Assembly (NCBI GenBank): GCA_002269645.1
Contig: NIVC01001908.1
Location: forward strand, 62,001 to 126,000
Reading direction: 5' to 3'
Length of the DNA: 64,000 nt
Source: Macrostomum lignano
Taxonomy: Eukaryota
The notes under the pieces were generated by a model. The model worked only from the letters and a program-made list of their open reading frames with translations, searched no databases and was not told the DNA's origin. The position numbers and the translations under genes are program-made. This document shows, in pieces, positions 3,298 to 63,851 of the stretch (its first letter is position 1; every line of letters starts with the position of its first letter).

Positions 3298-16389
<13,092 letters not shown>

Positions 16390-18803
16390 CCAGTCGCCAT
16401 GAAGAAAAAAATTGTTATTATTTAATTTTACCACAAATTAGTTATGATTATGTATATATAAGGATACAAAATTTGAATAATAATAGTTGTCTTAAACAAA
16501 AACTTCAATTCTAAACTAGCAAAGCAGCAATACAATAATGCTTTATTAACTAAAATTATTAACTTAAAAATCCATTAACTAGCACATAAAAGCAAAAAAT
16601 ATATAAAGGCAAAGTTACACATGAAGATCCCAACTTAACATAGACATATATTTAAAATATATTATACATTTTTTAATTCTAATAATTTTCTAGAAATAAA
16701 CAAGAAATTTTCTGAAAATTCAGACTAGACCATTTGGATGTAGGCTAAGATCATTCCAGTCCAACCAGGCTGTAGCCTACTAGTATATCTGGCCTTAACC
16801 TATTATTTAGTATTTTGCTAAAAAATAATGTAGAAATTTCAAATTTTATTGTCTGTCTACCTAAGAAAACTAGTGATTTGCAAAATTAAATATTTAATTT
16901 TGAAACAAAAAGTTGTTCTTATATTTCTCTAGCAGTAAAAATACTAAAAGCCAAATAAAATGCAAAAAATTAACAGATATCATGCCTGCGAAAAAAACAG
17001 TAATTGGGAACTGGTGAATTGAATTGAGCTGAACTGAACTGAACTTCATTGAACTGAATTGAATTTTCGATGTTTCAAAAAACTTGAAGAAAAGTGCTGA
17101 TAATTACTCTCAAACGATTATCGGCGTTTGGGCTACAGCCTACAGTTCGTTTTTGCATAGGTGGCCTCTCTTGGCTCGAACTCGAATGGATCTCAGCGAT
17201 CATCATGAAAAGCCTCATTGAATAGGCGGGATGATATATTTGGTTGACAACAATCTTTTGTATATTAAGAGCAAAAATTTGCTTTTCTGTAAATTTATTA
17301 TGTAAAACTAATACATATCTGGCGAAGGCATATGTATATCAGCGTTTTTCATTAAACTTAGGAGAAAACTTGTTTTAATAGTTAACAGTTTATTGTAATT
17401 TAAATTATAAATAGAACGCAAAACGAAACTCACCTTTGTGGCAAAGTCTAAAAATGTCTTTTGCTTACTTCTGGATTTGCTTCATATAAAGCTTGCTCCT
17501 CGCGAAGCTTTTTGGATTAAAATAGTATCATGCAAAGGCTCAGTCGAAATTGTGACGCGAAAGACCCAATTTTTTAGCCTGCAAACAACTAGTTTTCTTG
17601 TCCCCCTCGACATATCACACAGTTGCGCCCAAAAATGGACGAAATAGCGTTGTGTTGAGCGATACATATACATGTAAAACAATGTTTTACTCGCCTATAT
17701 TCACAAGTCGGTGTCCAGCTTGCCAAAACTATGTATGTTCAAATGTGATCAATGTTCACATGTGCACATGTGTGCAGTACACAGTACCCAAATACACAGT
17801 AGCCTACATGTATAGTATGAAACCAAGCTCCCTTTCTCCAAAAAATGCTTTTTCTGGACATATTTTCTGATATAAGGTAAACCTATAGATTTGAAGATAT
17901 AGAAATGTATACTTTTACGCTCGCGCGTATTATAAATTTGGAATTGAAGGTACATGTATTATGTACATGTACAAACACTGCGGTCTCTACTGACTTTGGA
18001 GGAGCCGCCATTTTGCCTTTGCTTTTTAGCTCGTATAATTTGCAAAGGGAACGCGTGTCTCCGTCTTCGAGTTGAACGGCAGTGGGCTTTTGGACTCCAT
18101 TGCTCAGTGGAGTCCATGCACAGTTCTCCTTCACTTGTTCCAATTTTCGGACTTCATGTACGAGCTAAACATGTATGATATTTCGGGTTTATGATGGCCC
18201 CTTTTATTATTTTGGCTATGAATAAATCGAGCTCTTGGGCTTCTAAGTAAAAAACTGTTCAGGGTAAATAAACATAAACCCAACGGTTGAAATTGAACAA
18301 GGACAAAAAAGTGTCTGCACAATGTTACGCGCTCGTACATCTTCGCGGTTTATCAGCGGGAAGAGGGAGAGCTGGAGAAGGAATATTGACGATTAGAGAG
18401 CAGCACATTGCACGAAGAGAACTGAAGAAACGCTGCAAATATTCTAAACACTTCACTACAGCTCAGGCGGACTTGGCCAACGCAGCCTAGCTCAGATCAG
18501 CTTAACGCTTAAGAGAATACCAACACCCGTCCCCCATTGCCACGATTGTATGGTCTTTATCTCCTTTTCTATCCCTGTCGCTCCCGTCCTCTCTCGCTTT
18601 CTCACATGTTTCTCTCTGTCAGTTTGTTTCTCAAAGTTTCCATGGAAACATTAGCCAGGCCCCAAGACGATAGACTTTCCTACTAAAGCAGAGTTTGACT
18701 GCATCGGCTCTGCGCCACTTCCCCAGTTTGTTGAGATTCTCAAGCTCACAGCCTCTCACTCAGTGCTGCCTTCTCATTCCTACTTACTCGACGGCCTTCC
18801 AAA

Positions 18804-21800
18804 ATGTCCTTATCGAGCATTGCCGTCATCGTGGCCATCTGGAGCTCTCGAGCTGCCGGTGAGACCTTCGTCTTCGACAAGAGGCCGGACCTGTGCTTCG
18901 CGGAGGCGGCCCCGGCTGCTGGCGACCAGCGCAAAGTGCTCGGAGTTGTTGACTCTCGAGTGTGCGCGGTTGAGTGCGCGGTCAACACCAGCGTGTGCTC
19001 CGTCTACTAATACCTGCCTGGCAACAAATCCTGCGTCCTTGGCAACAGCTGCGACCTGCTGCTGAAGTGGCAGAGCACTGGCGGGCCAGCGTGCGACACG
19101 CAGACGCTTCGAGATCGGGCAGCGTGCGGGTCCACGAGCGACACTGCAGCCACAACTGCAGCCTCGACTGGAGCAGTTGCTACTACAACTACAACACCAA
19201 CTACAACTACAACACCAACTACAACTACAACACCAACTACAACACCAACTACAACTACAACACCAACTACAACTACAATGCCAAGTACAACTACAACACC
19301 AACTACAACACCCACTACAACACCAACTACAACACCCACTACAACTACAACTACAACACCAACTACAACATCCACTACAACTACAACTACAACACCCACT
19401 ACAACACCAACTACAACACCCACTACAACTACAACTACAACACCAACTACAACATCCACTACAACTACAACTACAACACCCACTACAACTACAACTACAA
19501 CACCAACTACAACTACAACTACAACACCAACTACAACACCCACTACAACACCAACTACAACACCCACTACAACTACAACTACAACACCAACTACAACATC
19601 CACTACAACTACAACTACAACACCCACTACAACTACAACTACAACACCAACTACAACACCCACTACAACACCAACTACAACACCCACTACAACTACAACT
19701 ACAACACCAACTACAACATCCACTACAACTACAACTACAACACCCACTACAACTACAACTACAACACCAACTACAACTACAACTACAACACCAACTACAA
19801 CACCCACTACAACACCAACTACAACACCCACTACAACTACAACTACAACACCAACTACAACATCCACTACAACTACAACTACAACACCCACTACAACTAC
19901 AACTACAACACCAACTACAACACCCACTACAACACCAACTACAACACCCACTACAACTACAACTACAACACCAACTACAACATCCACTACAACTACAACT
20001 ACAACACCCACTACAACTACAACTACAACACCAACTACAACACCCACTACAACACCAACTACAACACCCACTACAACTACAACTACAACACCAACTACAA
20101 CATCCACTACAACTACAACTACAACACCCACTACAACTACAACTACAACACCAACTACAACTACAACTACAACACCCACTACAACTACAACTACAACACC
20201 AACTACAACTACAACTACAACACCCACTACAACTACAACTACAACACCCACTACAACTACAACTACAACACCCACTACAACTACAACACCAACTACAACT
20301 ACAACACCAACTACAACTACAACACCAACTACCAGGGGTACAACTACAGCACCAGCTACAACACTCAGTGCGCCATCTGCATTCAATGGTAAGTGCGCAT
20401 GAGAATTAAAAAACCAAATGTCGGGTTCTGGATGCTATTATAGATAACAGTGTAACAGTTTATAGCGATATCTATTTATTTTATGTCAGCAAATTATGTC
20501 AGCAACAACTTGAAGGTGAACTGCAGAAAGGCAGGTATAAAGTCGAAAGTCGAACCACTGTAGTATAACAAGACGTAGAACTCATCTTTTGGAGGCCAAT
20601 TTACTAAAAGAACACTGCGAAAAATTATTTCATCATCACAAAAGCAATGCTGGCATTTGATCTGGGGCAGTAAAAATTACTTATTCGTATAATCACAAAC
20701 AAGCACAACATATGTTACTCTGTTGTATTTTATACAGTTGTGTAGTGAAAGTTTCATATTGTTTTCTTTTTAATTGAGAAGCCCAAGGTTGTAAACACTC
20801 ATAAGTGGCACTATATCTGAAATTTTTGTTTTGCTCCTTCTCAAATCAAATATATTTGTAATAAAAATGTGGCAAGCAGGTACTCTAGGTACTCTAAGCC
20901 AATATTGTAGGTATAATGATCCATTTCAATGCATATTAGTTCCTAGATACATACATACATGCATACACAGTTTGTGCATACAACTTTGGGCTTATTAAAT
21001 GAAAAAAGACAATATAAAAATGAAACTTTCTCTACACAGGTATATCATACAATAGAGTAACCAAGGACTACTAAAGTAACATATATATAGAACGCAACAC
21101 TCGAAATCTATGGTAAATGTTTTGAAGGCAACTTTTCGCCGAAAAATACACTACAGAGATAGGAAATTTCACGATTTTCAACACTAAAACAGTGATTGGG
21201 TCTCTTAACAGTGTCAGAGAAAGTTCTAATCACACAATTTTGTGCTTCACATGCTGCTCTAACGACGCATTAATCGATCCATTATTTTAAACGTTTTTTT
21301 CAAGTGACAGACCAATTAAACATGAAAAACGATTAATGCGTCGTTAGAGCAGCATGTGAGGCACAAAATTGTGTGATTAGAACTTTCTCTGACACTGTTA
21401 AGAGACCCAATCACTGTTTTAGTGTTGAAAATCGTGAAATGTCCTACCTCCGTAGTGTATTTTTCCGGTGAAACCTGCCTTTAAAACTATTTCTGAACGA
21501 AAAGCTTTATGAATATTGATAGAGCAATAAGAAAGGCACAACATATCAAAAGATGAACACTGGATCTGCCTCCTATCGAAAGCAATAGCAATTTTTGTGC
21601 TGAAAAAATTAAAACCTCCTATCTCTGTAGTGTATTTTTCGGCGGCAAGTTGCCTTCCATTTACTTAGATTTCGAGTGTAGCGTCCTTCTACTTAAGTTG
21701 TCCTTGAGAGTAACATGCTGTGCATGCTAAATTAAAAGAATGGTAATCATCACTGCCCCAGAGCTGGCATCGATGCAACGAAATTCAATTTATTATTTGA

Positions 21801-23682
21801 TGAAAAAATGTTTTCTTCCATCTTCTAACCCGAGTAAATTAGCCGGTCTCTGACTGTTTTTACCATGGCTGCCTTCTGGCGGCATTTCTCGGGTTGTGGG
21901 CAATCCAATTGACCTACCCTTAAGGTAGCTCAATCCTAAAGTGTCCTCACGGGAGGTAGATGTGCATTCCAAAAATAACTTCTCTAAGTTTCTGCCCTGC
22001 CTTGGTTTAGGGGGGGGGGGTTGTACCTGGAGTGATTGTGACTCTGGACTGCAGTGTGGCTGAGCCCCCGGGTCGTAGTACCCACCCTGCAGGAAAGACG
22101 ATCATTCACAAAAGTGTACGGTAGAGCCCAGTCGATGCCAGCCCTGAGGCTGAGCCCCTAGTGATCCTCCTCCATTATTGCTTTTATCCCTGTCTTTGTG
22201 CTTTGTGTTTTATCCCTTGCTTTTAGCTTTTGGTCCATGGACAACTAGAGTAGTCTACTCTAGTTGTCCATGTTTTGGTCATGATCGAGCCAACCCAAAA
22301 TTTAGGAGCTAAGATCTCGCCTCTGTGAATTCCATCGGCTCCCTCGGCCCAGCTGCTGTCTCCTCTGGCTGTCTCCCTGCTTATTGTGTCTCGGCTATTA
22401 TCACTTGTGGATTGGTGTCCTGGGGAATGAGTTCGTCCCGAATCGGGGAATACCGGCTGAGTCCGGTGTCCCTTTGCTCTGTGCTGCTCCTCTCCAACCC
22501 CTGAGCTTGGGCTTATTAGAGCTGGGTGGTGAAAAAGCCTTGTGGCTTGCAGCCCTATTGGAGGTTTTATCCTGGAGGCCTGCCTGATAGGAGACTTGCC
22601 GCTGGTAAATAAGCTGCTCACACTCTTTCCCCACAAGCTAGTAGCAGCTAAGCTAGGGTAAGTCCCCGGCCTCCAATACTGGCGTCTCGGGCTTATGCTC
22701 CTAGTAGTGTCGCCCTACAAAATCCCTGCGGCAGAGCCCTTCCCTGGACTGATCCGCGCTAGGCTAAGCTTAGCACCTCGTTTAACAACAACAACAAAAT
22801 TAACCTTCTAAATAATTACACGTTCTCAGAGTTTTACACCAGCTGTTGTACGACAATGGTCCTTGCAATAAAAACTCAAATTCCATCGAACTCCCTCCAG
22901 CTCCTCCGTCGGACTCGAGCAACCAAACTGGATCGGTGCAGACTTTCACTCCGCCGAACGACGGCTGCTATCAAATCTCGGCTTGGGGCGCCAGAGGCGG
23001 CAAGTCATCCGCTAACGCGAACGGCGGCAGAGGCGCATTCAAGAGCGCCAATTTCATGCTGACCACGTCGCAAACTCTCACGCTTGTTGTTGGCAAGCCG
23101 GGAAACAGCGGCAGCAGCGGCGGAGGAGGCGGAGGAGGCGGCAGCTTTGTGTACACAACCGGCCCCAGCACGCTGCTGCTGGTGGCCGGTGGCGGAGGAG
23201 GCGGCGGCGCCGCATCTTCTTCGACGATCGGTAAGGACGGAACAAGCAGCACCGGAGGCTCTTGCAGCACATCAGACGGACAAGGCGGTGACGGTGAAAG
23301 CTTTAGAAACTCTGGCGCGGGCGGAGCTGGTTGGAGCTCAGATGGAACAGCCCTGGCCACTGACAAAAACGGAGGCCACGGTGGAAGAAGCATCGGCGGC
23401 AACTGGGCCGGAGGCAACGGAGGGCCGGGCAGCAACGGCTTCGGCGGCTACGGTGGAGGCGGCGGAGGCGGCAACAACAATGATGAAGATGGAGGCGGCG
23501 GCGGAGGAGGCGGCTACTCTGGCGGCTGCGGAGGACCCGGCGACAGCAGTGACGGCTACGGAGGCGGCGGTGGCAGCTACGCGAGCTCATCCGGCAAGCA
23601 GGCCACGGGAACGACAGGCGGCAACGGTGAAGTCTTCGGCAAGGTGAGCATCGCTCAGGTGGACGGCTCTCTGTGCAGTTAA
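18804..23682 (+). CDS. Secreted PAN/Apple + Thr/Pro mucin stalk + ALK/LTK-type glycine-rich domain protein; interrupted by an in-frame TAA (possible null allele, pseudogene or sequence error)
   Basis: Exon 1 (18804-20388): hydrophobic signal MSLSSIAVIVAIWSSRAAG, PAN-like CAVECAVNTSVCSVY*YLPGNKSC, then ~380 aa of T/P repeats in the same frame; GTAAGT donor at 20389. Exon 2 (~22832-23682): YQISAWGARGG, LTLVVGKPG, GGGGGSFVY, LLVAGGGGGG, typical of the ALK/LTK glycine-rich domain. Joining the two exons is inferred. Confidence 0.7.
19180..20330 (+). repeat. Coding ACT/ACA/CCA trinucleotide-derived repeat (poly-Thr with interspersed Pro), mucin domain
   Basis: In frame with the upstream signal peptide and the downstream donor site. 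Confidence 0.85.
21062..21706. mobile_element. Non-autonomous foldback DNA transposon (CAAGG...CCTTG termini, 8-bp TSD), P-element-superfamily-like
   Basis: TSD AGAGTAAC at 21054-21061 and 21707-21714. Internal 111-bp inverted arms at 21166-21276 / 21330-21440. Right part matches the element at 49410-50106. Confidence 0.85.
22022..22700 (+). mobile_element. Possible LTR-like segment in the mucin gene intron
   Basis: G-run (PPT-like) at ~22010-22020 followed by TGTACC; TGGCGTC (PBS-like) at ~22680. No second copy or internal ORF. Confidence 0.25.
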
Positions 23683-24167
23683 CATGAGCAAAATATTTCA
23701 AAGAATATTCATACGTATGCTATATAAATTACATTATTGAGTGTAACGATAGCTACCTTAAGCATAGCTAGGACATAATGTTAATAAGACTCTTGGTTTT
23801 TTATTTGCAGTGATCGTAAGTTTGAAATAAATATTTTTGTAGCAATGCAATTGATTTAAATTTTTTACTGTTCAAATTATTTTTAACAAAATTTAGAAAA
23901 CATAACTCCTCTGGATGCCCGCAGGTAATAGGTTTTCTTCTAATGTTTCAAATTTTAAATGATAATTTCTGAACAAATATACTAAGAACTCATCATCCCT
24001 TTAAACAAATAGGATTTCTGTGAAAGCCAATTACAACACCTTAGCATTTTTTTTAGTCTTTTTGAGATTGAGTTAAAACATAAGCACTCTAGTCAAGAGT
24101 AATCAAAGAAAGGGAATGAGTTACGACTAAATCATGGCCGTCAGCTGTCAATATTTTACACTTCTCT

Positions 24168-31029: not shown

Positions 31030-31551
31030 CGAACAACAACAACGACAACAACAGAGTACGCTGCCAGTTCGCAAAAGCAGCGTCAGATGGCGCGCTTCGA
31101 AGCTTGGGCGCGAACAAAGGCCGCACCGCCGGCAGAGTCCGGGGCGCCGGCGTCAGCCAGCAGACAGTCGACGTAGCGCCGAGTCCTCGCCTGTCCCCGC
31201 CGGTAGGGTGCCTGCAACGTAAGTAGCAGCACCTCCTGCACCGGCTCCGGACAGTAGGCCTCGGCGCGGATGACGTGGCCTGCCAGCTGGAGTCGCCGAC
31301 GGCGCAGCAGATCGCTAGGACGGGCCAGGCCGGCGCGATGACAGAGCGCCGTGTTGGTGACTCGCTCGTTGCCGATCTTGAAGGTGGCGCGCAGCAGGCC
31401 AGCGTGCGCCGTGTCGACTTGAGCCTCGAGCGAGTCTATCAGCGTCCAGGTCTCGGCGTTGTATAACAGGACGGTCTCGATCACCGCCTGGAACAGCGCC
31501 GCCCTCTGGCGGTCCGGTAGGGCCTCGGACTGCAGGACTGACCTTATAGAC
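31030..31551 (-). mobile_element. 5'-truncated RTE-clade LINE 3' end with (GTT)n tail
   Basis: LFQAVIETVLLYNAETWTL...LRRRRLQLAGHVIR...RRGQARTRRYVD* is a typical RTE C-terminus; TGTTGTTGTCGTTGTTGTTG tail on the minus strand. Confidence 0.85.
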
Positions 31552-31571
31552 CTCCGTCCTGCAGGACGGAG

Positions 31572-32200
31572 CCGAACGCACTCGTCCATTCTTCTGCGCC
31601 AGGCCTCCATGCAGCCCTCGAAGGCTTTTTTGGGAATACCTACTAGCAGTTTCGTCGTCGTGGCCCTTCTGAAGGTATCAACATCAGGAAATTGAGTTTG
31701 AGCTTGGGAACCTCCTTGAGCTTGGGAAATAGGAAAAAATCGCACGGAACTAGATTGGAAGAATATCGAAGCTGGTCTAGCACTGTGACATTCCTATTCG
31801 CGAGATACTCCCTGACACTTGGAGCATTGTGAGCTGGCTCATTGTCCTGATGAAGGAACCACGAGGTTGCTTCCCACAAATCGTGTCTCTTGTCTCGCAC
31901 TGGGGGAAGCAGTTGCTGCAGGATCCCTTTGTACACATGCTGATTGATGGTTTGACCTTGGCGCAGAAACTCCATGTAGATAATGCCTCTGACATCTGAC
32001 ATTGAAGGTCTTCCACTCCTGGAGTCGTCCTCGACCTCCTCCCGCCCTCCTTAAATCGTTTGTGCCACTCAAAACTCGGGAGCGAGACATAGCATTAACT
32101 CCATACACTTTCCGCAACAGTGCAAGTGCTTCCGAGGGCGATTTATTGAATCGGACCAAAAACTTTAGATTGGTTCGTTGCTTGGTGCTCATTGGCACGA
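31572..32200 (-). pseudogene. Internally deleted mariner (DD34D) transposase relic
   Basis: MSTKQRTNLKFLVRFNKSPSEAL (HTH N-terminus), DDSRSGRP, WFLHQDNEPAH and YSSNLVPCDFFLFPKLK (degenerate DNAPAH and YSPDLAPCD motifs), with frameshifts. Confidence 0.9.
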
Positions 32201-33817
32201 CGATTGTTAAAAACTTACTGGACGTTACTAATAGCACATATTGGCACAAAAGTGATGATCAGCTGAAATTGCAGGACAGAGCTCCTGTTATATGCTGCTA
32301 CAGCCTGCAACATGTCGCAAATTGATAGTGCATACAGAAGCTGCGCTGTAGGCACAGTCCTGGAACTTTTCTGACGCATTTGCACCACTTCAACAACGAG
32401 AGCGACATGTCGCGAGAGCGACCATACAAGCACGGAAACATGTGCGAATCATGATGATAATGATGATGCTGATGATGATGATGATGAACTAGTTAAGTAG
32501 ATTACCTGACACATAAACAGGGTTTACATTGGCAAGTGTCCCGATTTGAGCTCAGAGTGGTCTCACAGTCGGTCGAGAGTTCCAAAGCACTCAACCTGTC
32601 CTCGAATTAAGCCCATGCAGCCCGCATACTCGAGCATTTTTGCACACTTCAACTATTCCTGCAACGGCATTTAGCGAGCGGCTTCTCAAAGCTTTCTGAG
32701 GGGGGGATCGGATTATTTAAGAATATCCCACGGGACTCTCCGCTTGATGCTTGCGAGCTGAAATCAAAACCGATTGTTGCAAATCTCTCTCGTATCCTCC
32801 ATCAGCTGGGATTTCATATTTCAGCTATAGAAAATTTTCCAGCAGTTTCAGTTCCACATGCCCAGGCTAGAAAAGATAGTTTAAAAAATTGAAATTCGCT
32901 CGCTTTTCAAATGTTTTGTTCAAAAAAGCGCCTCCAGGACTTACCATGCCAACAGCCAGCGATTCTCTCCAGCAAAATAGCAGCTGAATGCCTCATAGAA
33001 ACAGAACAACAGAAGCTGGCTTTCAAGGATTGAATAGTCTCAGTGCCTGCAGTCGACTCCACATTAAAATAATACTTCAATATTTAGATCGGCGGGGCTG
33101 ATTGTGGCGTGCAGCCTCTATTCAACGGTTGCGTGCGTCATACAGGCAAATTTGCATACAGAAAAGCAGAGATCAATTGCCGTCAATTTTGCCTGGCTTT
33201 CAGTTACCTATTCAGCTTTGTGCATTTTTTTTCATCTGCGCTCGCAGTTACGCCTCATCGCTATAATTAAAAGGAATGAATGATAGCTCAACTAAAATAC
33301 AACATCTCGCTCGGCTATTACTCTCTCCTAATCGCTGGCTTCAAAATATTGCTTCAAAGCTAAACGTTTCTTCAAAAATTGTATTTTTCAAATCGTCACT
33401 TAATTGATCCGATAATTGGCGAGAAAGCCTTTGAGATGACAGGGTCTTCATCCCACAGCATTTTTTTGTCAATGGGCTTCAAAATGATACTAAATTTTCG
33501 TACGTTATAGCCCGTATCTCATAAAAAACTTGGCGAAAATCAGTGCTGTGCATTGCAGACTAAATAAAGCTGGAAAACTTAACTGCACACTTTTAAACTT
33601 GGAGGTAAAAGCTGTTATCGGTAAAGATCAAGAAAATTAATTTGTACCGACGAATGCAAGCTGCGTTTACTAATGTGCACCGACTAAAACAGCCGTCGGG
33701 ACTGCACAGACCTCTGCATAAAAGTATATTTTCGTCACATTTGATTGATGATTGACAGAGAGCGGCCAATAAGACTCTAACAGTTTAACTTCGCAAAAAG
33801 GTGTTATCTGAGTTAAT

Positions 33818-39749: not shown

Positions 39750-42330
39750 ATCTAATGTAGATCTGTTGCTAACTGATAGAAGCGATGCGTGATTAGATCC
39801 ACGAGTAGATCTGTTGCTAATTGATAGAAGCGTGATTAGATCCATGAGTAGATCTGTTGCTAATTGATAGAAGCGTGATTAGATCCACGAGTAGATCTGT
39901 TGCTAATTGATAGAAGCGTGATTAGATCAATGAGTAGATCTGTTGCTAATTGATAGAAGCGTGATTAGATCAATGAGTAGATCTGTTGCTAATTGATAGA
40001 TGCGTGATTAGATCCATGAGTAGATCTGTTGCTAATTGATAGAAGCGTGATTAGATCCATGAGTACATCTGTTGCTAATTGATAGATGCGTGATTAGATC
40101 CATGAGTACATCTGTTGCTAATTGATAGAAGCGTGATTAGATCCATGAGTAGATCTGTTGCTAATTGATAGATGCGTGATTAGATCCATGAGTACATCTG
40201 TTGCTAATTGATAGATGCGTGATTAGATCCATGAGTAGATCTGTTGCTAATTGATAGATGCGTGATTAGATCCATGAGTAGATCTGTTGCTAATTGATAG
40301 ATGCGTGATTAGATCCATGATTAGATCTGTTGCTAATTGATAGATGCGTGATTAGATCCATGAGTAGATCTGTTGCTAACTGATAGAAGCGTGATTAGAT
40401 CCACGAGTAGATCTGTTGCTAACTGATAGATGCGTGATTAGATCCACGAGTAGATCTGTTGCTAACTGATAGATGCGTGATTAGATCCACGAGTAGATCT
40501 GTTGCTAACTGATAGAAGCGATGCGTGATTAGATCCATGAGTAGATACTTGAGTAGATCTGTTGCTAACTGATAGAAGCGTGTTTAGATCCACGAGTAGA
40601 TACTTGAGTAGATCTGTTGCTAACTGATAGAAGCGTGATTAGATCCACGAGTAGATCTGTTGCTAACTGATAGATGCGTGATTAGATCCATGAGTAGATA
40701 CTTGAGTAGATCTGTTGCTAACTGATAGAAGCGTGATTAGATCCATGAGTATATACTTGAGTAGATCTGTTGCTAACTGATAGATCCATGATTAGATCCA
40801 TAAATAGATCTGTTGCTAATTGATAGATCCATGATTAGACCCATGAGTAGATACTTGAGTAGATCTGTTGCTAATTGATAGATGCATGATTAGATCCATG
40901 AGTAGATACTTGAGTAGATCTGTTGCTAATTGATAGAAGTGTACCGATTAGATCAATTATTAGATCTGTTGCTAATTGATAGATCCATGATTAGACCCAT
41001 GAGTAGATACTTGAGTAGATCTGTTGCTAATTGATAGATCCATGATTAGACCCATGAGTAGATACTTGAGTAGATCTGTTGCTAATTGATAGATGCATGA
41101 TTAGACCCATGATTAGATCCATAAATAGATCTGTTGCTAATTGATAGAAGCGTGATTAGATCCATGATTAGATCCATAAATAGATCTGTTGCTAATTGAT
41201 AGAAGTGTACCGATTAGATCAATTATTAGATCTGTTGCTAATTGATAGATCCATGATTAGATCCATGAGTAGATACTTGAGTAGATTTGTTGCTAATTGA
41301 TAGATGCATGATTAGATCCATAAATAGATCTGTTGCTAATTGATAGATCCATGATTAGACCCATGAGTAGATACTTGAGTAGATCTGTTGCTAATTGATA
41401 GATGCATGATTAGATCCATGAGTAGATACTTGGGTAGATCTGTTGCTAACTGATAGAAGCGTGATTAGATCCATGATTAGATCCATAAATAGATCTGTTG
41501 CTAATTGATAGAAGTGTACCGATTAGATCAATTATTAGATCTGTTGCTAATTGATAGATCCATGATTAGTTCCATGAGTAGATACTTGAGTAGATCTGTT
41601 GCTAATTGATAGATGCGTGATTAGATCCATGATTAGATCTGTTGCTAATTGATAGATGCGTGATTAGATCCATGAGTAGATCTGTTGCTAACTGATAGAT
41701 GCGTGATTAGATCCATGAGTAGATACTTGAGTAGATCTGTTGCTAATTGATAGATGCGTGATTAGATATATGAGTAGATCTGTTGCTAATTGATAGATGC
41801 GTGATTAGATCCATGAGTAGATCTGTTGCTAACTGATAGATCCATGATTAGACCCATGAGTAGATACTTGAGTAGATCTGTTGCTAATTGATAGATGCAT
41901 GATTAGATCCATGAGTAGATACTTGAGTAGATCTGTTGCTAATTGATAGAAGTGTACCGATTAGATCAATTATTAGATCTGTTGCTAATTGATAGATCCA
42001 TGATTAGACCCATGAGTAGATACTTGAGTAGATCTGTTGCTAATTGATAGATGCGTGATTAGATATATGAGTAGATCTGTTGCTAATTGATAGATGTGTG
42101 ATTAGATCCATGAGTAGATCTGTTGCTAACTGATAGATGCGTGATTAGATCCATAATTAGATCTGTTGCTAATTGATAGATGCGTGATTAGATCCATGAG
42201 TAGATCTGTTGCTAATTGATAGATGCGTGATTAGATCCATAATTAGATCTGTTGCTAACTGATAGATGCGTGATTAGACCCATAAGTAGAACTGTTGCTA
42301 TCTAGATAATTAACTGAAGCGTGATTAGAT
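39750..42330. repeat. 43-bp GATC-rich satellite with 55-bp variant units
   Basis: GATCCATGAGTAGATCTGTTGCTAATTGATAGATGCGTGATTA; the central region carries a 12-bp ATACTTGAGTAG insertion variant. Confidence 0.97.
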
Positions 42331-46300: not shown

Positions 46301-47168
46301 GCTCCTTCTATGATCTTCGCTCCCTCCTCACACCCGCTGCTTCTTTGACCTTCGCTCCCTTCTCACACCCGCTCTTTCTATGACCTTCGCTCACTTCTCA
46401 CACCCGCTGCTTCTATGACCTTCGCTCACTTCTCACACCCGCTGCTTCTATGACCTTCGCTCACTTCTCACACCCGCTCCTTCTATGACCTTCGGGCTTC
46501 GCTGACTTCTCACACCCGCTCCTTCTATGACCTTCGCTCCCTTCTCACACCCGCTCCTTCTATGACCTTCGCTGACTTCTCACACCCGCTCCTTCTATGA
46601 CCTTCGCTCCCTTCTCACACCCGCTCCTATACTCCTGCTGCCAGCTTACACAGCAGCGGGCGGCGAACTGCAGGGAACATTGTTATGCAACGGTTGTGGC
46701 GGCGGTGGCACAGCGGCGGCGGCACCAGCGGTAGGTGCCGGCAGAGACGACAACAGTGGCAAAATTGGCAAACTGTCGTTGGAAGCAATCGACGATCTAG
46801 CTGGTTGGCTAAGACTATCATTCGAACTACGGTTTGCCGTGTTATTATTGCGCTGATTATAACTATTTCGATTAGTCTTGTGCCGTACAGTTAGTTTAAC
46901 ATTGGGCTCGACAGCATAGCCATTGAACTGATTGACAGCCTGCTCTGCTCCAGACCAATCGCGCATGTTCACAAAGCCTTGCAGAGTGCCATTGTCGAAG
47001 TGCTGTTTAATGAAAACTGATTCCACAGGTCCACAGGTCTCAAACATGCTCCATATTCTCCCCTACAGAGGTTGCATTTTTAATGGTTAGAGCAATATTG
47101 AAGCATAACAGTTAAAGTGAAGAAGTTCTAGTTAGTAATTACCTCTGCATAGTAGCTGGGCATCCCCG
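43369..47168 (-). CDS. RRM + two extended-Tudor-domain protein (TDRD10-like architecture); 5' end not resolved
   Basis: Exons 47143-47168, 46650-47062, 45282-45675, 44238-44817, 43369-43892 with consistent phases. RRM: GMPSYYAEGRIWSMFETCGPVESVF...QGFVNM...AEQAVNQFNG. Tudor: FWV...CRVQLIE...AFLVDIG...LRSLPASLAVPPCRAL. Second degenerate Tudor: VYLPDRGD...FASLPPLVVPVRLA...WSEAA. Confidence 0.8.
44870..45170. repeat. 27-bp intronic minisatellite
   Basis: CTAATCAATCCCAGATCCCAAAATCCC units. Confidence 0.9.
45725..46628. repeat. 35-bp intronic minisatellite
   Basis: TCTCACACCCGCTCCTTCTATGACCTTCGCTCACT, about 25 units. Confidence 0.97.
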
Positions 47169-48532: not shown

Positions 48533-49409
48533 CTTTTTTACTTTAATGCCTATATTCTAGAAAATATTATTCTTTCGAGAACTTTTTAATATGCATTTCG
48601 CTTGGTAAACATCAAATGTTCTATGTCTATAAGAATAAAAAACCAACTATCAACATTTTAAAGTTGATGCATTTTGCACTCCGTGGTGTATCTTCAGGTT
48701 TATTTTATTAGAACAAACAAAAAACGGAGGCTAACAATAATAAATATTTGTGTGAGGCAAAAAAAGAATTTTTTAAATGCATTGCATCAGAGTAGGCCTA
48801 CAAAATTTGTCAACTTACAAATGTTGATAGTTGGCTTTTTATTCTTATTATTTACAAAGCAAGCAACTTTATCTGATTTCTATGTCTATGCATTAAGTTC
48901 TGATATGTTTTTTATACAAAATCTTTAAAATATTGATCCACAAAATAATACTCTACTCTACCTACTTAAGGTTATATCATATATCCATGCCTTGATTTGA
49001 GAAATAGCTCCTATAGGCCTAAACCTATCTCTACCTAGCTTATTAGCTTTTATCAATATGTTTCTTTGTATTGTAGGCCTATTTATTGAAATATTGATAC
49101 AATGTTTAGGCTATTCTCAAGAATAACTAAATATATAGGATCATAGCCCTAATTCTAAAAATTATGCAATATGCAGTCAATGCAGATACCTGTTAAGCAT
49201 CAAGCAAAAATATCCCAAGGGGTCAGTCTCTAATAATACATAGGCCAGTCAACCTTACAAAAAAAACTGCCATGTATGCTACAGGGTCATTTTGAAAATG
49301 CGCTGGATAGCTATTCACTATTTAGCTAGTAACTTTTTCCAATATGGAATAAGGGAGGCTATTGCTTCGTTTGTGTTCCTTCTTAACTGGGTTCTTATAT
49401 TGTGTTCCT

Positions 49410-50106
49410 CAAGGACGACTTAAGTAGGACGGGAAACCTCGTTTCTTAGAAAAGTTTTGAAGGCACTTTCTCCCGAAAAAATACACTACGGAGATAGGAA
49501 GTTTTCATATTTTCAGCACAAAAATTGTTATTGCGTTTGATAGGAGGCAGATCCAGTGTTCATCTTTTGATATGTTGTGCCTTTTTTTATTGCTCTATCG
49601 GTATTTATAAAGCTTTTCGTTCAGAAAATTAGGATTCTATGTTAATTTTTTATTCTACGCATATTTTTTGCGTGTCCTGTGCTTGAAATACATTAGAATG
49701 CCACAGCTCGGCTCTTTGGTTTCATGAGTCTATTTTATCATTCTTACCCGACTGTGTAGCAAATATTTGTAACAGAGATGATAAAATAGGTTCATAAAAC
49801 CAAATATTGGAGCTGTGTCATGCATTTTTGTGATTTTTAGATACAGGAAATATACGTAGAATAAAAAATTAACATAGAATCCTAATTTTCTGAACGAAAA
49901 GCTTTATAAATACCGATAGAGCAATAAAAAAGGCACAACATATCAAAAGATGAACACTGGATCTGCCTCCTATCAAACGCAATAACAATTTTTGTGCTGA
50001 AAAAATGAAAACTTCCTATCTCCGTAGTGTATTTTTTCGGGAAAAAGTGCCTTCAAAACTTTTCTAAGAAACGAGGTTTCCCGTCCTTCTACTTAAGTCG
50101 TCCTTG
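49410..50106. mobile_element. Foldback MITE with ~250-300-bp TIRs, CAAGG termini and 8-bp TSD (P-element-superfamily-like)
   Basis: TSD GTGTTCCT at 49402-49409 and 50107-50114. Arms are near-perfect reverse complements. Confidence 0.9.
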
Positions 50107-53440: not shown

Positions 53441-55677
53441 GGCCTCGGTAGGCATACTAAATCAGTAAATGTATACTAAACTATATATAGTATACTAAAC
53501 AACGTCAACTGCCTCACGGACACGGTATCGTCCAACTCTTTAGTTGGCGTCGGCGATAGTGACAGCTCGTGGTCTCGTGACGGGCGGATGGCCGTGCACT
53601 TTTAGGGGGCCACATTTTTAAATACTTTTTTACTGCAACAGACGTTTTATTATCTCTTTTTAGGGTGTTTGCAGTCAAAAAATTTTAGAACGTTACAGAA
53701 AGTTTTGTAGATTAAATCACACATTTTTGGATTAAAAGCAAAACATGTGTTAAAAATAGACTGGAAACAGTGTAAATTTAAATATACGATTACAATGTTC
53801 AAGCTAGCTATAATCTATATATCCGATCGATCGAATTGCGTTCAAGTTACAAGTTACAAAGTTGTTTGTTACCACCCTACCGTGATCGACTAGAAGGGAT
53901 AATATGTACTCTACCGCTCTTCTCTAAGGCATCTAGTGCATCATTCAATGCGCTTTACAAAAACGGCAATTTAAATTCTCTTTCTTTTTGTCTTTGGACT
54001 GTTTTTATTGACATTTTCAATGTGATCAATCAGACATTAGAACTTAGAAATTGAAAATGTTTTAAGGTTTTTTTCTTGAATCAGCTATTCATGAGAGTGT
54101 AATGGTTTGATAGTGTATGAATAGCTCTTCATTTATATTATAGGCGGCATAGGCCTTAATCCCTTCCCTATTAAGTATTAAGTTTCAATCTAGGCCCTAG
54201 TTTAACCATTCCATTGTGAGTTAACTCAAATATCATAGACCCAGGCGTAGGCCTAGTCAATGAAGATTTTTTTTCAAATGCCTTTTCTAAGCCTATAGCC
54301 TAGGGTTAGGCCTATATTAGGCCTTACCTTAGGGTTTGTAGCTTCAACCTTCAATAGGCCTAATAAATAACATTTTTGCAATTTTATAATAAAGGACCTT
54401 TTGGATGCCACGCCAATAGCATTTTGCATACAAAAACTTTGTTTATGTGTCACAAGTAAAATTCCTAAAAATTTTCAAATACATCATGATAACTTCCAGT
54501 TTTTTCATTATATAAGTCATAAGATTCTTTCTTATAAAAAGTCTACACAATTATAGATTATACTTGTTTATTAACAATATGTGCCCCATAGTCCAGATGG
54601 TGTAATGTGGTACGCCGGAAGGAAAAAGGATTCCCAAGTGGTATGCCAGTGGTACGCCAAAAGAATATATATTGATATATAATTGTATGTTAATGTTAGT
54701 ACGAAAGAAATAATAAACATTTCGACTTTGAAAATGGTAAAAATATGGCAGACAAACTTTAACAATTATTAAAAAATAACAGATATAATCAGCGCTCATA
54801 AATTTATTTACCAATAATACTAGGCTAAATTATTTTATTAATTTATTTATATATTTATAAAATGATTAATCAAGTTATACAATGCAGGAAAAAATATATG
54901 CAATTTTTTACGTAAAATACATTGTTGTGTGATGTAGTCGTATCTTGTATGTCGTAATTTACGCAAAATTACAAAAAGTTTTTACTCTGGCAACAATTTT
55001 TTTGCCTGGTGGTGCCAATGGTACGCTAAAAGTGGTACGCCAATTCAACTTCAGCTTGGTGGTATGCCAAAGGTGGTACGCCAAATGCTTTTTCAAATCG
55101 GTGGTACGCCAATAGTGGTATGCCATTTTTTGGAAAACTCATTTGGTACGCCGGAAATCTCCAACACTCTGCAACATCTCTGCAACACTGGCAGAGTTTT
55201 AAGAATGCATGTGCACTCAAATTTTTTTCAGCATGCACTTGCAACTATTGATTTTTGTTCAGGCGTGCACCCAGCATGATCTAGATGATGAAAATATACA
55301 AGTTTTTTTAAATATGCACAAAATGCATCTAAGATTTTATATAAAATTATAACCAATTTATTTGTTAATCAATAAGCCTAGCATTACCTTTGAGTAGCAG
55401 CATTATACTTTGGATAGTAAGCATTAAACAAATTAGTATATATTGAATTCAATATTAGAAAATCTAAATGACAATCTATATCTAGATAATGCTGAGTGCA
55501 CGCCCAAACAAAAATTGAATAATTACATTTGCATACCAAAAAAATTGAGTGCATGCCCAGTCCTAAAACTTTGCTAGTGTTGCCTCAATAAATGACCTTT
55601 TTAAATTGCATAATAAACCCTTTTTGCAAAATAATAATTTAATGAGCTTTACTACTCTACTTTAAAAGCATCTAGAC

Positions 55678-55678
<1 letters not shown>

Positions 55679-55732
<54 letters not shown>

Positions 55733-55745
55733 TATATATATATAA
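55679..55745. repeat. (TA)n microsatellite
   Basis: Seen directly. Confidence 0.95.
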
Positions 55746-57049
55746 TGATTAATATAATACTTTCTAATTTGTACTTTCAATTATTATATAAAGAGTATGA
55801 GAAAATGGAATTACTTGTATATCAGTTTGTTATTATTCATTATATTTATAGTTACTTGATTTATTATAATAACATGAAAATAGGCACTTTTTATTATTTG
55901 TATTGAAATTTAAGTGGTTAATAAATATAATATATTTGATTCAAAGCTTTAATCAATCATAGATAGACCTAGGTTTGATTAGCCTAACTAGATCTAGATT
56001 AGACCTAGGTATAGAAAGGTAGACCTAAGTTATCTAACTCATTGATTATTATTAATCTATTAAATTGTATAGGTAGTAGGCCTACAATACTTAGCCTGAT
56101 CCTATATATTAAGGTCTTTAGTGTCAGTGAGGGTGACTTTACTTTAGTGATTTCCTAATATATGTGTGGCAAAGGCCTTATAAAAAGCTAAATTAAATAA
56201 AAATAGTTTATTTACAAATAATTAACAATGATGCAATGATGAAAATGGTTGCCAATAGCAACTTAAATCTAAAAATCAATCTTGATATTTTACTTTAGAT
56301 GCAAAATTGTACCCAACTTTTGACAATCATTTATTGCACCTTGTATATAAGAATTAAACATGAGCCACAATGCACAAGTGAATCAAAGTTTTATAAGCAT
56401 TTCTTAGAATAAGTTTTCTAGCTGATTACTGTAAAATGATGTTTTTTTAGATGGATTGTTGTTAAAAAAATATAATTAGCAAACAAAAGTGCTTTATTAA
56501 CTACTTGGTATTTTGTATAATGCCCATAAGCATAGAATGAATTCACAGCTAGTCTAACACATTCAGCTGATGATGCACTCAACACAAGCTTGCAGATGGC
56601 TACCTATTTTATAGGCTAGATTATAGATAATGAGTACATCCCAGGCAACTGGCTGGCACCTAAGATAGAATTTTAGACAAGATTTTATATAATTATAAAT
56701 AAAGTGTTCACTGCTTCTAGATATCTAATGCATGCACTAATATAATTATGCTAGCAGTTAATAGTAAAGAAACCATATACAATTTGAATAGGCTCTATCA
56801 GTATTGGTTTCAGATATCCTTAATGCACTTTGTGGTTTATTAGGAATGTCAGAATGTGAACAAATTGGCTAGGTAGGACAACTTGTTCAGGTATTTTACA
56901 ATTGGTAAGCTTATGTCAAAGGCTAAAAATCCTGTCAGCAGCAACAATGGTTGGACAGTCTATTTAGATTTCTAGGAACAAAGGAGGAAAAAAAACAAAT
57001 TTTTTTCAAGAGTAAGTGATTGAGTTAGATTAGGCTTTTTCAATATCAC

Positions 57050-57200
57050 CATGCTTGGGCACAACCTAGGAATTCACTCAACTGTTTATATTGGCAACAC
57101 ACACACATAAGTCGCTATTAGATAGAATAGTAGTCACATGACTGCTCTCAGCCATGTGTGTGTTGCCAATAGAAATGGCTGAGTGATTCCTAAGGTTGCA
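57050..57200. mobile_element. Partially deleted copy of the hairpin MITE at 48365-48532
   Basis: CCATGCTTGGGCACAACC...GTCACATGACTGCTCTCAGCC...TTGCCAATAGAAATGGCTGAGTGATTCC. Confidence 0.7.
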
Positions 57201-58397
57201 CTTGTATGAATATCACAATATATAAATATGTTTACTTCTGGTAGAATGTTTCTTTATATGATTTTTATTGAACACCTGTGTCTCTAAGAAAGGAGCTAGA
57301 AAGAGATATAGTAAACACCAATTTCATATTTTATTAAAATACTCCAATCCCAATGTGTGTGTAGTAGTGTCAAAATTTTCTGTCTTTTGTTGCTTGAATC
57401 CCAAATTCTAAGGACTTAAGAGCTCCCTTCACATTGAAAATGAAAACATTCATCTTAACATTAGCCCCTACCCCTCACCACCCAACCACAATGTGCATGT
57501 GGCATCAGAGCTCCCCTTAAAATGTGAAAACATTCATCTTAACTATCAACTCCAGCTCCTTTTACTCAACCATAATGTGGACATGGCATTGGCTATCTAT
57601 GTTGATGCTTGAGTCCTAAATTCCAGAGAATTTGAAATTGGCAACATTCATTTATTTCTACTACCCTAACCCCATCAAATCAACAGCTCCAATGGTCTTT
57701 CAAGAGTGGTATTACTAGATATGGGAAGTATATGTTTCCATAACTATATCTATATGCTTGGCCCAAAACCTCCATATCTGTCCCTATAGTGGAATTCCAT
57801 ATTTTAATTACTCAAAGTTCGCATTAGGCAAATTAACTCCAGAAAGCCCAAACTAGTACTTACAGCATGCAGCCAGATTAGGCAAATGTTAGGTCATAGT
57901 GTGCTATCTAGAAGAAGATGGCAGTAACAATTAAGTGTGCCATGTCAGTAACAATACAGCAATAGTAGGTCTTGTTTTGCTAGCATAGCTGCTGCAGTGC
58001 AGTTTATGGAGCTCTATGAAGTCAAGGCAAGTGGGATACAAAATAGCTTTCAATCGCATGGTGCTTTACTTCTAGCTGTTTCAAAGCATGGCGCTAGCTA
58101 AAGGTCCATAAGTTACGCCTGGATCTCATATGGTGACAGAGAGTGATAGGCTTTCATACCTAAGGCAGTTTTGTTCATTACAGGAATTTAATTTAACAAA
58201 TACAGACAGAAAATACTGTAAAACTGACAAAAAGAAAGCCTAAATGTTTCTCAGGTGTCATTAAAAGTACATGACCTGCATTTTAATCATTATTGTTTCA
58301 AAGTACAATCTGTTAATTTTTTTAAATGGAGTTCCATCCTGCTAATTATCAGTAAATCAAAAAGATTTCAGCTCAGATTATCAATTACTAAAGCAAC

Positions 58398-58553
58398 ATG
58401 CCGTCGCACAAGACTTTCCGCATGAAAACTAAGCTGGCCCGAAAGCAGAAGGTGAATCGGCCAGTGCCGCAATGGGTTCGCATGCGCAATGGCAACACGG
58501 TGCGGTACAATGCCAAAAGGCGGCACTGGCGCCGTACTAAGCTGAGGTTGTAA
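58398..58553 (+). CDS. RPL39: 60S ribosomal protein L39 (eL39), 51 aa, intronless CDS (missed by the ORF track)
   Basis: [51 protein letters not shown]; AATAAA at 58648-58653. Confidence 0.97.
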
Positions 58554-58647
58554 TATGGATTGATTGTTTCGTGACGTCAGATTGATGTAGCATAAGTGGA
58601 ATCGTTTGAGCTGACTGCTGACATTTTGCTTAAGTCTGTTTGAAGCA

Positions 58648-58731
58648 AATAAAAACAATTTATTGCTGACGGAATCTGATTTGGAATTTCGGTTTTCTCT
58701 TATTTCTTTTTTCTAGGCACAGCTGCTTACT
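58648..58731 (+). promoter_or_regulatory. rpl39 poly(A) signal followed by a U-rich tract, AG acceptor (58716) and a 15-nt non-coding exon
   Basis: AATAAA 58648; TTTTCTCTTATTTCTTTTTTCTAG|GCACAGCTGCTTACT|GTAAGA. Confidence 0.5.
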
Positions 58732-58769
58732 GTAAGAAGAATGTGCTCTTAATTAGACTGGGATTAATC

Positions 58770-60180
58770 CATTCCCACCTGCTATAATTCTCTACCTGAC
58801 CCATTCCTACCTGCTAATATTCTCCACCTGACCCATTCCTACCTGCTAATATTCTCCACCTGACCCATTCCTACCTGCTAATATTCTCTACCTGACCCAT
58901 TCCTACCTGCTAATATTCTCTACCTGACCCATTCCTACCTGCTAATATTCTCCACCTGACCCATTCCTACCTGCTAATATTCTCCACCTGACCCATTCCC
59001 ACCTGCTATAATTCTCCACCTGACCCATTCCTACCTGCTAATATTCTCCACCTGACCCATTCCTACCTGCTAATATTCTCCACCTGACCCATTCCTACCT
59101 GCTAATATTCTCTACCTGACCCATTCCTACCTGCTAATATTCTCTACCTGACCCATTCCTACCTGCTAATATTCTCCACCTGACCCATTCCTACCTGCTA
59201 ATATTCTCCATCTGACCCATTCCTCCTACCTGCTAATATTCTCCACCTGACCCATTCCTACCTGCTAATATTCTCCACCTGACCCATTCCTACCTGCTAA
59301 TATTCTCCATCTGACCCATTCCTCCTACCTGCTAATATTCTCCACCTGACCCATTCCTACCTGCTAATATTCTCCACCTGACCCATTCCTACCTGCTATT
59401 ATTCTCCACCTGACCCATTCCTACCTGCTAATATTCTCTACCTGACCCATTCCTACCTGCTAATATTCTCTACCTGACCCATTCCTACCTGCTAATATTC
59501 TCCACCTGACCCATTCCTACCTGCTAATATTCTCCACCTGACCCATTCCTACCTGCTAATATTCTCCACCTGACCCATTCCTACCTGCTAATATTCTCCA
59601 CCTGACCCATTCCTACCTGCTAATATTCTCCACCTGACCCATTCCTACCTGCTAATATTCTCCACCTGACCCATTCCTACCTGCTAATATTCTCCACCTG
59701 ACCCATTCCCACCTGCTAATATTCTCCTCCTGACCCATTCCTACCTGCTAATATTCTCCACCTGACCCATTCCTACCTGCTAATATTCTCCACCTGACCC
59801 ATTCCTACCTGCTAATATTCTCCACCTGACCCATTACTACCTGCTAATATTCTCCACCTGACCCATTCCTACCTGCTAATATTCTCCACCTGACCCATTC
59901 CTACCTGCTAATATTCTCCACCTGACCCATTCCTACCTGCTAATATTCTCCACCTGACCCATTCCTACCTGCTAATATTCTCTACCTGACCCATTCCTAC
60001 CTGCTAATATTCTCTACCTGACCCATTCCTACCTGCTAATATTCTCCACCTGACCCATTCATACCTGCTAATATTCTCCACCTGACCCATTCCTACCTGC
60101 TAATATTCTCCACCTGACCCATTCATACCTGCTAATATTCTCCACCTGACCCATTCCTACCTGCTAATATTCTCCACCTG
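58770..60180. repeat. 32-bp minisatellite between rpl39 and coq10
   Basis: ACCTGACCCATTCCTACCTGCTAATATTCTCC, about 43 units. Confidence 0.97.
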
Positions 60181-60271
60181 AGCTACGCAACCTTTTTCAG
60201 CACTCTACTGCTGTCGCTGCCTAACCTTTTTTACCGGCCTCCTCTGCGGTCCCAAGAGGTCGACTATTAAG

Positions 60272-60913: not shown

Positions 60914-61699
60914 TGGCATCGGCAATCTGGCCTGAATCGGAAGTTAATTGTTCTTTCAAAAGAAGTGACGACATGATATACAATAGTAGAGATTCGCAGG
61001 CTGAGGCAATTCTGCCCGTTCCACTGACTCCTGAACGCACACGCTCACACAGGGTGTACAGCAGCCCTGACTCAAATCCTCAGGGGTCATCGGAATAGGC
61101 ATGACTGTTGGCCTCATCTCTCTGACTGCATATCAACTGTTCTATTGGCGTATTTCAAGGACAGTTACAACTATCTTTCGTCTCGGGCATGAGCTTTACT
61201 GTCACCGATGCTCAGTCTGGTGCTGCTCAATCATTTCTTTATTAATATGCTGTAGTAATTGTACAGCTCCTGTGATACAATACAAATAGTTGAAATGACC
61301 TGTATGCTTTATGCGTTTATTGATAGACAAGGTTATATTGCTGTCTAATCAACTATTGTATTGTGAATTTGTGTATTGTGTAGTCAGTGCAGCACGTCTT
61401 TGATGCAAACATGCAGGGTTTTGTGTCCTACTTGCCCATACCACTGCGTCCTGGGCTTGTGTCTGCCTTTTATTTGTAGTAATAAAACAAAAAATTATTT
61501 AATTTCGACATAGAGTCGTTCGCGTGGAAGTTACAAGGTTGTGAGTTTCTTCTTACATTGAGCTAAATAGGTTGGGAATGGGTAGGAATCTATGTGGGGG
61601 CTTTAGAGGTATCACAATAGAGGGGGTTTATTTAAAGTATGGAAATTCCCTTTTATAATCAAAAGAGTATGGTAATTCACCCCGCCCCCCCCCCCCCGA

Positions 61700-62310: not shown

Positions 62311-62383
62311 CAGCAGAGCATCAAGAACAGATTGATTGAGTTCCAATGTTTGCATCGCAGAAATTTTAATATTCAAATTTCAG

Positions 62384-63671: not shown

Positions 63672-63692
63672 GATAGATAGATGGATAGATAG

Positions 63693-63767
<75 letters not shown>

Positions 63768-63768
63768 C

Positions 63769-63851
<83 letters not shown>

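Follow-up and report, generated by a model that had tools for sequence, protein, structure and literature searches.

A stop-interrupted paralogue of a Macrostomum lignano PAN/Apple and glycine-rich domain family carrying a mucin-like threonine/proline array

Does a locus of the free-living flatworm Macrostomum lignano that reads, in outline, as a signal peptide, a PAN/Apple domain, a threonine/proline stalk and a glycine-rich domain (GRD) of the type found in the receptors ALK and LTK encode a continuous secreted protein of a new kind? The locus lies at positions 18804 to 23682 of a stretch of 64,000 nucleotides (nt) from GenBank assembly GCA_002269645.1 (contig NIVC01001908.1, positions 62,001 to 126,000, forward strand), hereafter the window, in whose coordinates all positions are given. 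A sequence-only reading had proposed a secreted, kinase-less product of undescribed architecture, acting as a mucus or adhesive component or as a soluble ligand decoy. Our results identify the locus as an unannotated paralogue of an M. lignano family of secreted PAN-GRD proteins, and we consider it fairly probable that this copy is a recently inactivated pseudogene or a null allele. As assembled, an intact secreted product of 810 residues is not encoded, because a TAA codon lies within the PAN domain and because a non-canonical gAG acceptor is needed to reach the GRD exon.

The paralogue search recommended in the sequence-only reading was carried out as an exhaustive phmmer search of 1.84 billion representative sequences followed by a cluster look-up, and it recovered several PAN-GRD paralogues in M. 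lignano, among them fragments and the protein P0140. The latter is deposited as PAA61162.1/PAA91998.1 (BOX15_Mlig019850g1/g2) and in UniProt as A0A267H149, 'Apple domain-containing protein', with 403 residues and two intact copies that are 97.5% identical; it shares 35% identity with the window protein across both domains (E=7e-19). Within the 64-kb window itself no second PAN or GRD copy was detected by tblastn, the remaining matches being low-complexity repeats. P0140 resembles the window copy in the style of its signal peptide and in having a single PAN/Apple domain and a single GRD, spread over two exons that are separated by a phase-1 intron following ...AAT G/GT; unlike the window copy, it has a linker of ~40 residues, no Thr/Pro array and no in-frame stop. 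The order of signal peptide, PAN and GRD, the two exons and the phase-1 intron are thus all found in the window locus when the second AG of its cagAG acceptor is used, whereas the uninterrupted reading frame of the A0A267H149 family is absent, given the TAA at 19008-19010 and an out-of-frame cAG.

The first exon contains the following features:

18804-18860, plus strand: start codon and predicted signal peptide MSLSSIAVIVAIWSSRAAG, placed from the first ATG after a stop in the frame, hydrophobicity and the paralogue alignment.
18894-19127, plus strand: PAN/Apple-like domain from C31 to C108, interrupted by a stop, placed from the Pfam PAN_1 score and the alignment with P0140/A0A267H149.
19008-19010, plus strand: in-frame TAA inside the PAN domain (CSVY-stop-YLPGNKSC), seen in the frame translation and opposite the Q of TVYQL in P0140.
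19182-20387, plus strand: Thr/Pro tandem-repeat region of the mucin-like proline/threonine/serine (PTS) type, 402 codons in the PAN frame, placed with Tandem Repeats Finder (TRF) and by composition.

Reading from the ATG at 18804 gives MSLSSIAVIVAIWSSRAAG followed by ETFVF..., with cleavage presumably after AAG. The signal peptide proposed earlier was corroborated: this region holds the top Kyte-Doolittle windows of 19 residues in the protein (1.44 from residue 6 and 1.32 from residue 1), and the N-terminus aligns with MSLSLIAAILLSTLAQDASG of P0140, which has a similar start and AxG motif. The cysteine pattern from C31 to C108 can likewise be aligned with the domain of P0140 to which UniProt gives the name Apple, in agreement with the domain assignment of the sequence-only reading, which had nonetheless left the TAA inside the domain unreported. 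Against Pfam PAN_1 (PF00024, cut-off 21.4 bits) the domain scores 20.7 bits with an X at the stop, just below the cut-off, and 22.9 bits once the stop is replaced by the paralogue residue (Q); P0140 gave no Pfam PAN match at E<0.1.

Owing to this TAA, the open reading frame (ORF) from the ATG at 18804 comprises only 68 codons instead of ~810, and the continuous secreted product claimed earlier is therefore not supported. Since the cysteine spacing is intact on either side of the TAA and the codon aligns with a glutamine of the intact paralogue, it represents a point nonsense change rather than a frameshift or an intron. A small intron excising the stop was considered and rejected: splicing from the only GT sites before it would remove conserved cysteines or break the frame, and the paralogue is intronless there. 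A non-standard genetic code was discarded as well, since TAA, TAG and TGA all serve as stops of other ORFs in the window and TAA also terminates the GRD ORF.

The 3' part of the locus comprises two features:

22832-23682, plus strand: terminal exon with a short linker, an ALK/LTK-type GRD (structured core ~22933-23661) and a TAA stop, placed by homology, AlphaFold2 and Foldseek.
23826-23831, plus strand: AATAAA polyadenylation signal, 144 nt past the stop, read from the sequence.

The exon-2 product has 283 residues, with its stop (TAA, 23680-23682) ~7 codons past the GRD core. By sequence, the domain matches LTK (7nx0) with E=1.1e-9 and ALK (7lrz and others) with ~4e-4, and the N-terminal half of the product (residues 25-150) scores 33.2 bits against PF12810 (cut-off 24.5), although the whole of exon 2 reaches just 12.6 bits after composition/bias correction. 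An AlphaFold2 model built from a 49-sequence alignment reached a predicted local distance difference test score (pLDDT) of 83.8 and a predicted template modelling score (pTM) of 0.85; the predicted structure has strands at either terminus, and its Gly-rich segments are non-helical. In a Foldseek comparison with the PDB, all of the 21 best matches were the LTK/ALK GRD ('TG domain'), with E from 2e-12 to 2e-6 and template modelling (TM) scores of 0.46-0.65, the best of them at 0.62-0.65. The terminal ORF is, as judged from this model, a genuine ALK/LTK-type GRD, predicted to consist of a TNF-like beta sandwich with polyglycine-II helices; both the terminal GRD exon with its stop and the structural check envisaged in the sequence-only reading were borne out. 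The same applies to the lack of a receptor apparatus: in the protein no hydrophobic window of 19 residues exceeds the signal peptide, so that no transmembrane segment was found, and a motif scan of the six frames of the 64 kb for HRD, DFG..APE and GxGxxG gave no kinase motif except for one match in a tandem repeat. No EGF-like module follows the GRD. Other frames are open across this exon, at 22971-23435 (minus strand), 23084-23647 (plus strand) and 23303-23701 (minus strand), because its coding sequence is GGN-rich.

Three further features are relevant to the linkage of the two exons:

20389-22831, plus strand: putative phase-1 intron of 2443 nt with donor AATG/GTAAGT, mostly transposon debris, placed from the donor consensus and the repeats.
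22828-22831, plus strand: tandem acceptor cAG/AG, of which the first AG leads to a frameshift and the second to the GRD frame.
22859-22900, plus strand: 42-nt in-frame GT...AG segment at the paralogue intron position, placed from the QLLYDN+G alignment and from residues present in the models P0160 and P0168.

The phase-1 donor at 20388/20389 is a perfect GTAAGT, located exactly 4 codons before the end of the unspliced PAN-Thr/Pro ORF (FNGKCA-stop, at 20402). The segment that it opens is 2443 nt long, and the mean annotated intron of M. lignano is 1.1-1.4 kb (PMC5730564). It contains a palindrome resembling a miniature inverted-repeat transposable element (MITE) at 21115-21492, whose arms are 86% complementary and whose relatives occur in both orientations ~28 kb downstream (49408-49627 and 49887-50106), followed by a putative retroposon fragment with an (AAC)n-A tail (21829-22804), just upstream of the GRD acceptor and flanked by direct repeats CTTCTAA at 21822 and 22805. 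At the acceptor, acgttctcAG/AG/tttt, the canonical cAG (exon 2 from 22830) yields NEFYTSCC..., a frameshift with a stop 79 codons beyond the junction. The second AG (gAG; exon 2 from 22832) reads NVLHQLLYDNGPC... into the GRD and would give a joined product ...SAFN-VLHQLLYDNGPC...GRD. A gAG two bases past a cAG is a very weak acceptor.

The proposal that both exons belong to one gene was supported as regards gene structure, while an in-frame join is obtained only via the weak second AG. Exon 1 of P0140 (signal peptide, PAN and linker) ends in AATG/GTGAGA in phase 1 and is followed by an intron of 744 nt and by the GRD and stop in one terminal exon; similarly, in the coral protein ABFA07_017308 of Porites harrisoni (P0081, 450 residues) a phase-1 intron leads into a terminal GRD exon. 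The link between exons 1 and 2 is supported because the paralogue and the coral gene both place a PAN exon before a terminal GRD exon via a phase-1 intron. The two M. lignano introns do not coincide: measured from the start of window exon 2, that of P0140 is displaced downstream by 9 codons, and the first nine codons of this exon 2 (LHQLLYDN+G) are matched by the last part of P0140 exon 1 (QLDAVYEN+G/gt). Consequently, what is contiguous coding sequence in the paralogue is split here by the Thr/Pro array and the 2443-nt segment, and the segment represents either an intron of recent gain or an insertion that disrupts the gene. The 42-nt segment at 22859-22900 keeps the reading frame and has counterpart residues in the paralogue models P0160 and P0168, and is therefore probably exonic in this subfamily.

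The Thr/Pro array consists of 80% T, 15% P and 2.5% S (97.5% T+P+S over 402 residues), encoded by ACA, ACT, CCA and CCC codons in tandem periods of 24 and 60 nt with 87-88% matches by TRF. A stalk of ~380 residues had been read from the sequence, and 402 codons were indeed found in the PAN frame; its ORF length, on the other hand, proves nothing, because the array contains no stop in any of the six frames, and the Thr/Pro reading rests on frame continuity with the PAN domain and on the consensus donor at its end. Two other frames were examined and discarded as sources of a PAN-GRD product: the 'YNYN..' frame meets a TGA via the cAG acceptor and an early stop via gAG, and the 'LQLQ..' frame is unconnected to the PAN domain or signal peptide. 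The older UniProt models P0160 and P0168, which represent the closer paralogues, read their linker as DYDSDYDFDYD..., an alternative frame of DNA coding for TTTPTTTSTT, so that the translated frame of the repeat in family members is putative. The array resembles mucin PTS domains in its T/P/S tandem repeats and in the signal peptide on the protein, which has none of the mucin-type flanking domains (VWD, SEA, CysD). Within the PAN+GRD family, this mucin-like insert is the sole feature particular to the window copy, and it may be a neutral minisatellite expansion.

Public gene models of the PAN-GRD family are poor. P0168 (A0A1I8GWL7, named 'Loricrin') has evident frameshifts, with SAWRQRR as the +1 frame of SAWGARGG, and both it and P0160 are unreliable; P0160 and P0219 correspond to A0A1I8J935 and A0A1I8HUE3, which together with A0A1I8IMV6 are fragments automatically named 'receptor protein-tyrosine kinase'. 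These GRD fragments bear that label although they lack a kinase. P0249 (UniParc UPI0007A34941), from an older assembly, is a chimeric model whose underlying sequence is a copy of the present locus, ~95% identical to it and with an identical 5' end of exon 1; the model joins a sense GRD piece to ORFs read antisense from the GRD exon and from the 5' end of exon 1, an instance of ab initio predictors picking up the antisense and alternative frames of the GRD exon.

The combination of PAN and GRD is not new, as it is already present in databases for M. lignano (PAA61162.1/A0A267H149) and P. harrisoni (ABFA07_017308), and the claim of an undescribed architecture has to be withdrawn to that extent. 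In the Porites protein, PAN_1 (31.9 bits) lies upstream of a GRD (34.3 bits) contained in one terminal exon and, unlike in the window copy, an extra exon of 50 residues with a weak COLFI-like match separates the two domains. This protein stands out within a large family of ~300-residue GRD proteins of scleractinian corals, including P5673_032583 of Acropora cervicornis and the 'glycine-rich cell wall structural protein 1.8-like' of A. millepora, which are secreted and kinase-less like the window product; coral and Porites GRDs are 33-40% identical to the window GRD, most coral members lack PAN, and none has a mucin-like array. Giant multi-GRD metagenome proteins account for many of the best-scoring GRD matches, and others carry PEP-CTERM or type IX secretion system (T9SS) sorting tags. 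Given its occurrence in corals, metagenomes and proteins with bacterial tags, the GRD is a widespread extracellular module rather than an ALK speciality. In the literature searched, no mention of Mlig019850 was found, and nothing on secretory proteins of M. lignano of the glycine-rich or PAN type or on the coral GRD family; PF12810 came up once, in a fungus, where it is treated as a domain of unknown function.

With the ALK/LTK GRD (PDB 7nx1, 7nx0, 7lrz, 7mzy, 7n00) the window domain has in common the fold, the N-terminal strand motifs and the Gly runs, at 19-31% identity (24-31% for vertebrate entries), and the E values of 1e-9 to 1e-4 were obtained against the small PDB set; towards coral and metagenomic GRDs, E values go down to 4.5e-20 (5.8 billion sequences), and to 8e-56 for multi-GRD proteins. 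In comparison with the receptors, the window protein lacks the EGF-like module, transmembrane helix and kinase, and it pairs its GRD with PAN where the receptors have MAM/LDLa. The next fold matches after ALK/LTK are phage tail tips (Bxb1, 9d93; the fibre of cyanophage Pam3, 7ypx), which are weak (E 4e-3 to 0.2, TM ~0.25). Glycine-rich receptor-binding tips of phage tail fibres are known from the T-even gp38 adhesins (PMC9608196, PMC12892980), and the likeness of the window GRD to phage tips is a resemblance only, not membership.

The inactivation that we favour has to be weighed against the possibility that the gene is functional, the TAA being either an error of sequencing or a null allele of one copy that segregates, and the gAG (or a miscounted T run) being used, so that a secreted PAN-mucin-GRD glycoprotein of ~810 residues is made in some gland or epidermal cell type. 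Several observations tell against inactivation and for a working gene: the GRD ORF is intact with a high-confidence fold, the GTAAGT donor is perfect and in the conserved phase 1, and the start and signal peptide are conserved with P0140, from which it follows that the inactivation was recent or that both lesions are assembly errors or polymorphisms. The join would be restored if gAG were used or if the tttt run at 22832-22835 had been miscounted by 1 nt, and the nearly identical copy behind P0249 in the older assembly points the same way. Set against this, the TAA is a substitution-type lesion, an unusual error in a polished assembly, and the required acceptor is of a generally weak kind. Furthermore, no protein from this locus was found among 15 billion predicted proteins, run assemblies included; the searched protein collections held none nearly identical to the GRD or PAN exon, a word-indexed search with the PAN N-terminus returned 0 matches, and exact-product look-ups of five window ORFs (COQ10, GRD from its internal Met, Thr/Pro, the 68-residue ORF and an upstream ORF resembling a tetratricopeptide repeat (TPR) protein) returned no record. 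The missing gene model is in turn uninformative about silence, and explicable for a working gene, because the GenBank annotation of M. lignano left out non-coding transcripts and those overlapping repeats (PMC5730564). The intactness of the GRD ORF says little either way, as G-rich ORFs stay open by chance and the antisense strand is open too. On balance, a functional gene appears rather unlikely.

It is also conceivable, at a clearly lower probability, that the PAN-Thr/Pro ORF and the GRD ORF are separate relics outside any common transcript, the array and the 2.4-kb segment being a disruptive insertion into a formerly contiguous linker, with coincidental splice sites. The position of both within the paralogue's contiguous coding stretch, the MITE- and retroposon-like pieces of the segment, the out-of-frame canonical cAG and the comparable minisatellites throughout the window are compatible with this view; it is at odds with a GRD ORF that lacks its own signal peptide and start codon (no in-frame ATG occurs before the one at 23056, which already falls within the domain), with a GTAAGT lying 4 codons before the ORF end in the family's conserved phase, and with Thr-rich-coding DNA of the same kind in the linkers of the models P0160 and P0168. 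The common GRD fold is all that speaks for the soluble ligand decoy of the sequence-only reading, that is, a kinase-less derivative of ALK/LTK binding an ALK ligand. We regard this as highly improbable, considering that the GRD is nearer in sequence to stand-alone coral and metagenomic GRDs than to ALK/LTK, that an EGF-like module after the GRD, a transmembrane segment and a kinase are missing, that its partner is PAN, as in the non-receptor family, and that GRDs are widespread in bacterial surface proteins with PEP-CTERM and T9SS sorting tags. A PAN-GRD family member that was inactivated recently, as a pseudogene or a null allele, remains our preferred reading of the locus.

With respect to the genomic setting, a single-exon COQ10 ORF at 60272-60913 is 100% identical to NCBI BOX15_Mlig000057g2 of M. 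lignano. The GenBank contig NIVC01001607.1 carries the same genes (RPL39, COQ10, a gene of 184 residues and VMA21), aligning at its positions 9791-30498 with 53683-63819 of the window; as the identity is only 92-97%, the comparison indicates a homeologous or allelic copy of the region in a hidden-polyploid genome. The PAN-mucin-GRD locus is not covered by this contig, which begins too far downstream. In M. lignano, 180 Mb of non-repetitive blocks are at least 95% identical owing to extra chromosomes, and simple and tandem repeats make up 15% of the genome (PMC5730564). Minisatellites are extraordinarily dense in the 64-kb window, where TRF detected ~35 arrays with periods of 11-255 nt, examples being those at 12165-13932, 39757-42300 and 58769-60181; a 27-nt unit repeated 65 times runs in frame within the minus-strand ORF 13150-14337 ('GVMEARGSS' repeats), and an array of 44 units of 32 nt lies immediately upstream of COQ10. 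Among the other ORFs, 31083-31745 (minus strand) resembles by eye the C-terminal part of a reverse transcriptase of a long interspersed nuclear element (LINE), and the adjoining 31839-32249 (minus strand) has, also by eye, a mariner/helix-turn-helix-like N-terminus. A TPR-like protein is encoded at 15946-16434 (minus strand), 2.4 kb upstream of the PAN-mucin-GRD locus, an RRM-like ORF lies at 46646-47047 (minus strand) and an EF-hand-like ORF at 63025-63444 (plus strand); for these three, the exact products had no database record in the forms tried.

The following history would account for the locus. Members of the family are small, presumably secreted proteins that combine a signal peptide with a single PAN/Apple domain and a single GRD, encoded by two exons joined via a phase-1 intron. 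In this copy, the short post-PAN linker would have been expanded by a 24/60-nt ACA/ACT/CCA minisatellite to ~400 Thr/Pro codons, after which transposons would have invaded the adjoining sequence, leaving the 2.4-kb segment now found between the array and the GRD exon. Subsequently, the TAA in the PAN domain and the out-of-frame canonical AG would have inactivated this copy, possibly one of several near-identical ones in a hidden polyploid; in a partly duplicated genome, the loss of such a copy would be cheap. An intact version would be secreted and heavily O-glycosylated, with the PAN domain and a rigid GRD as binding modules at both ends of a mucin-like stalk. By analogy with the functions of PAN domains, PTS domains and GRD-like tips in other proteins, our best guess for its role is matrix, mucus or surface binding rather than that of a signalling receptor or decoy, and the mucus or adhesive role suggested earlier is plausible. 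That intact, expressed alleles or copies exist in gland or epidermal cells, encoding a flatworm-specific mucin whose GRD would act as a carbohydrate- or surface-binding head, is an idea that we consider unlikely.

The sole animal GRDs studied are the ligand-binding domains of ALK/LTK, whereas the flatworm family and the large coral family indicate that some invertebrates possess many secreted GRD proteins without a kinase. What is new here is a mucin-like linker arising from minisatellite expansion in an existing family. This copy is interrupted and the PAN+GRD combination was already on record, and the intact Mlig019850 is therefore the better family representative and target. A PAN-mucin-GRD form would suggest that the GRD works outside the cell as a binding head carried by a glycosylated stalk, comparable to the glycine-rich tips of phage fibres. 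If intact expressed copies exist, they would offer the first functional handle on the kinase-less GRD proteins of flatworms and corals, and the locus would provide an example of a coding minisatellite and a transposon-derived new intron remodelling a gene.

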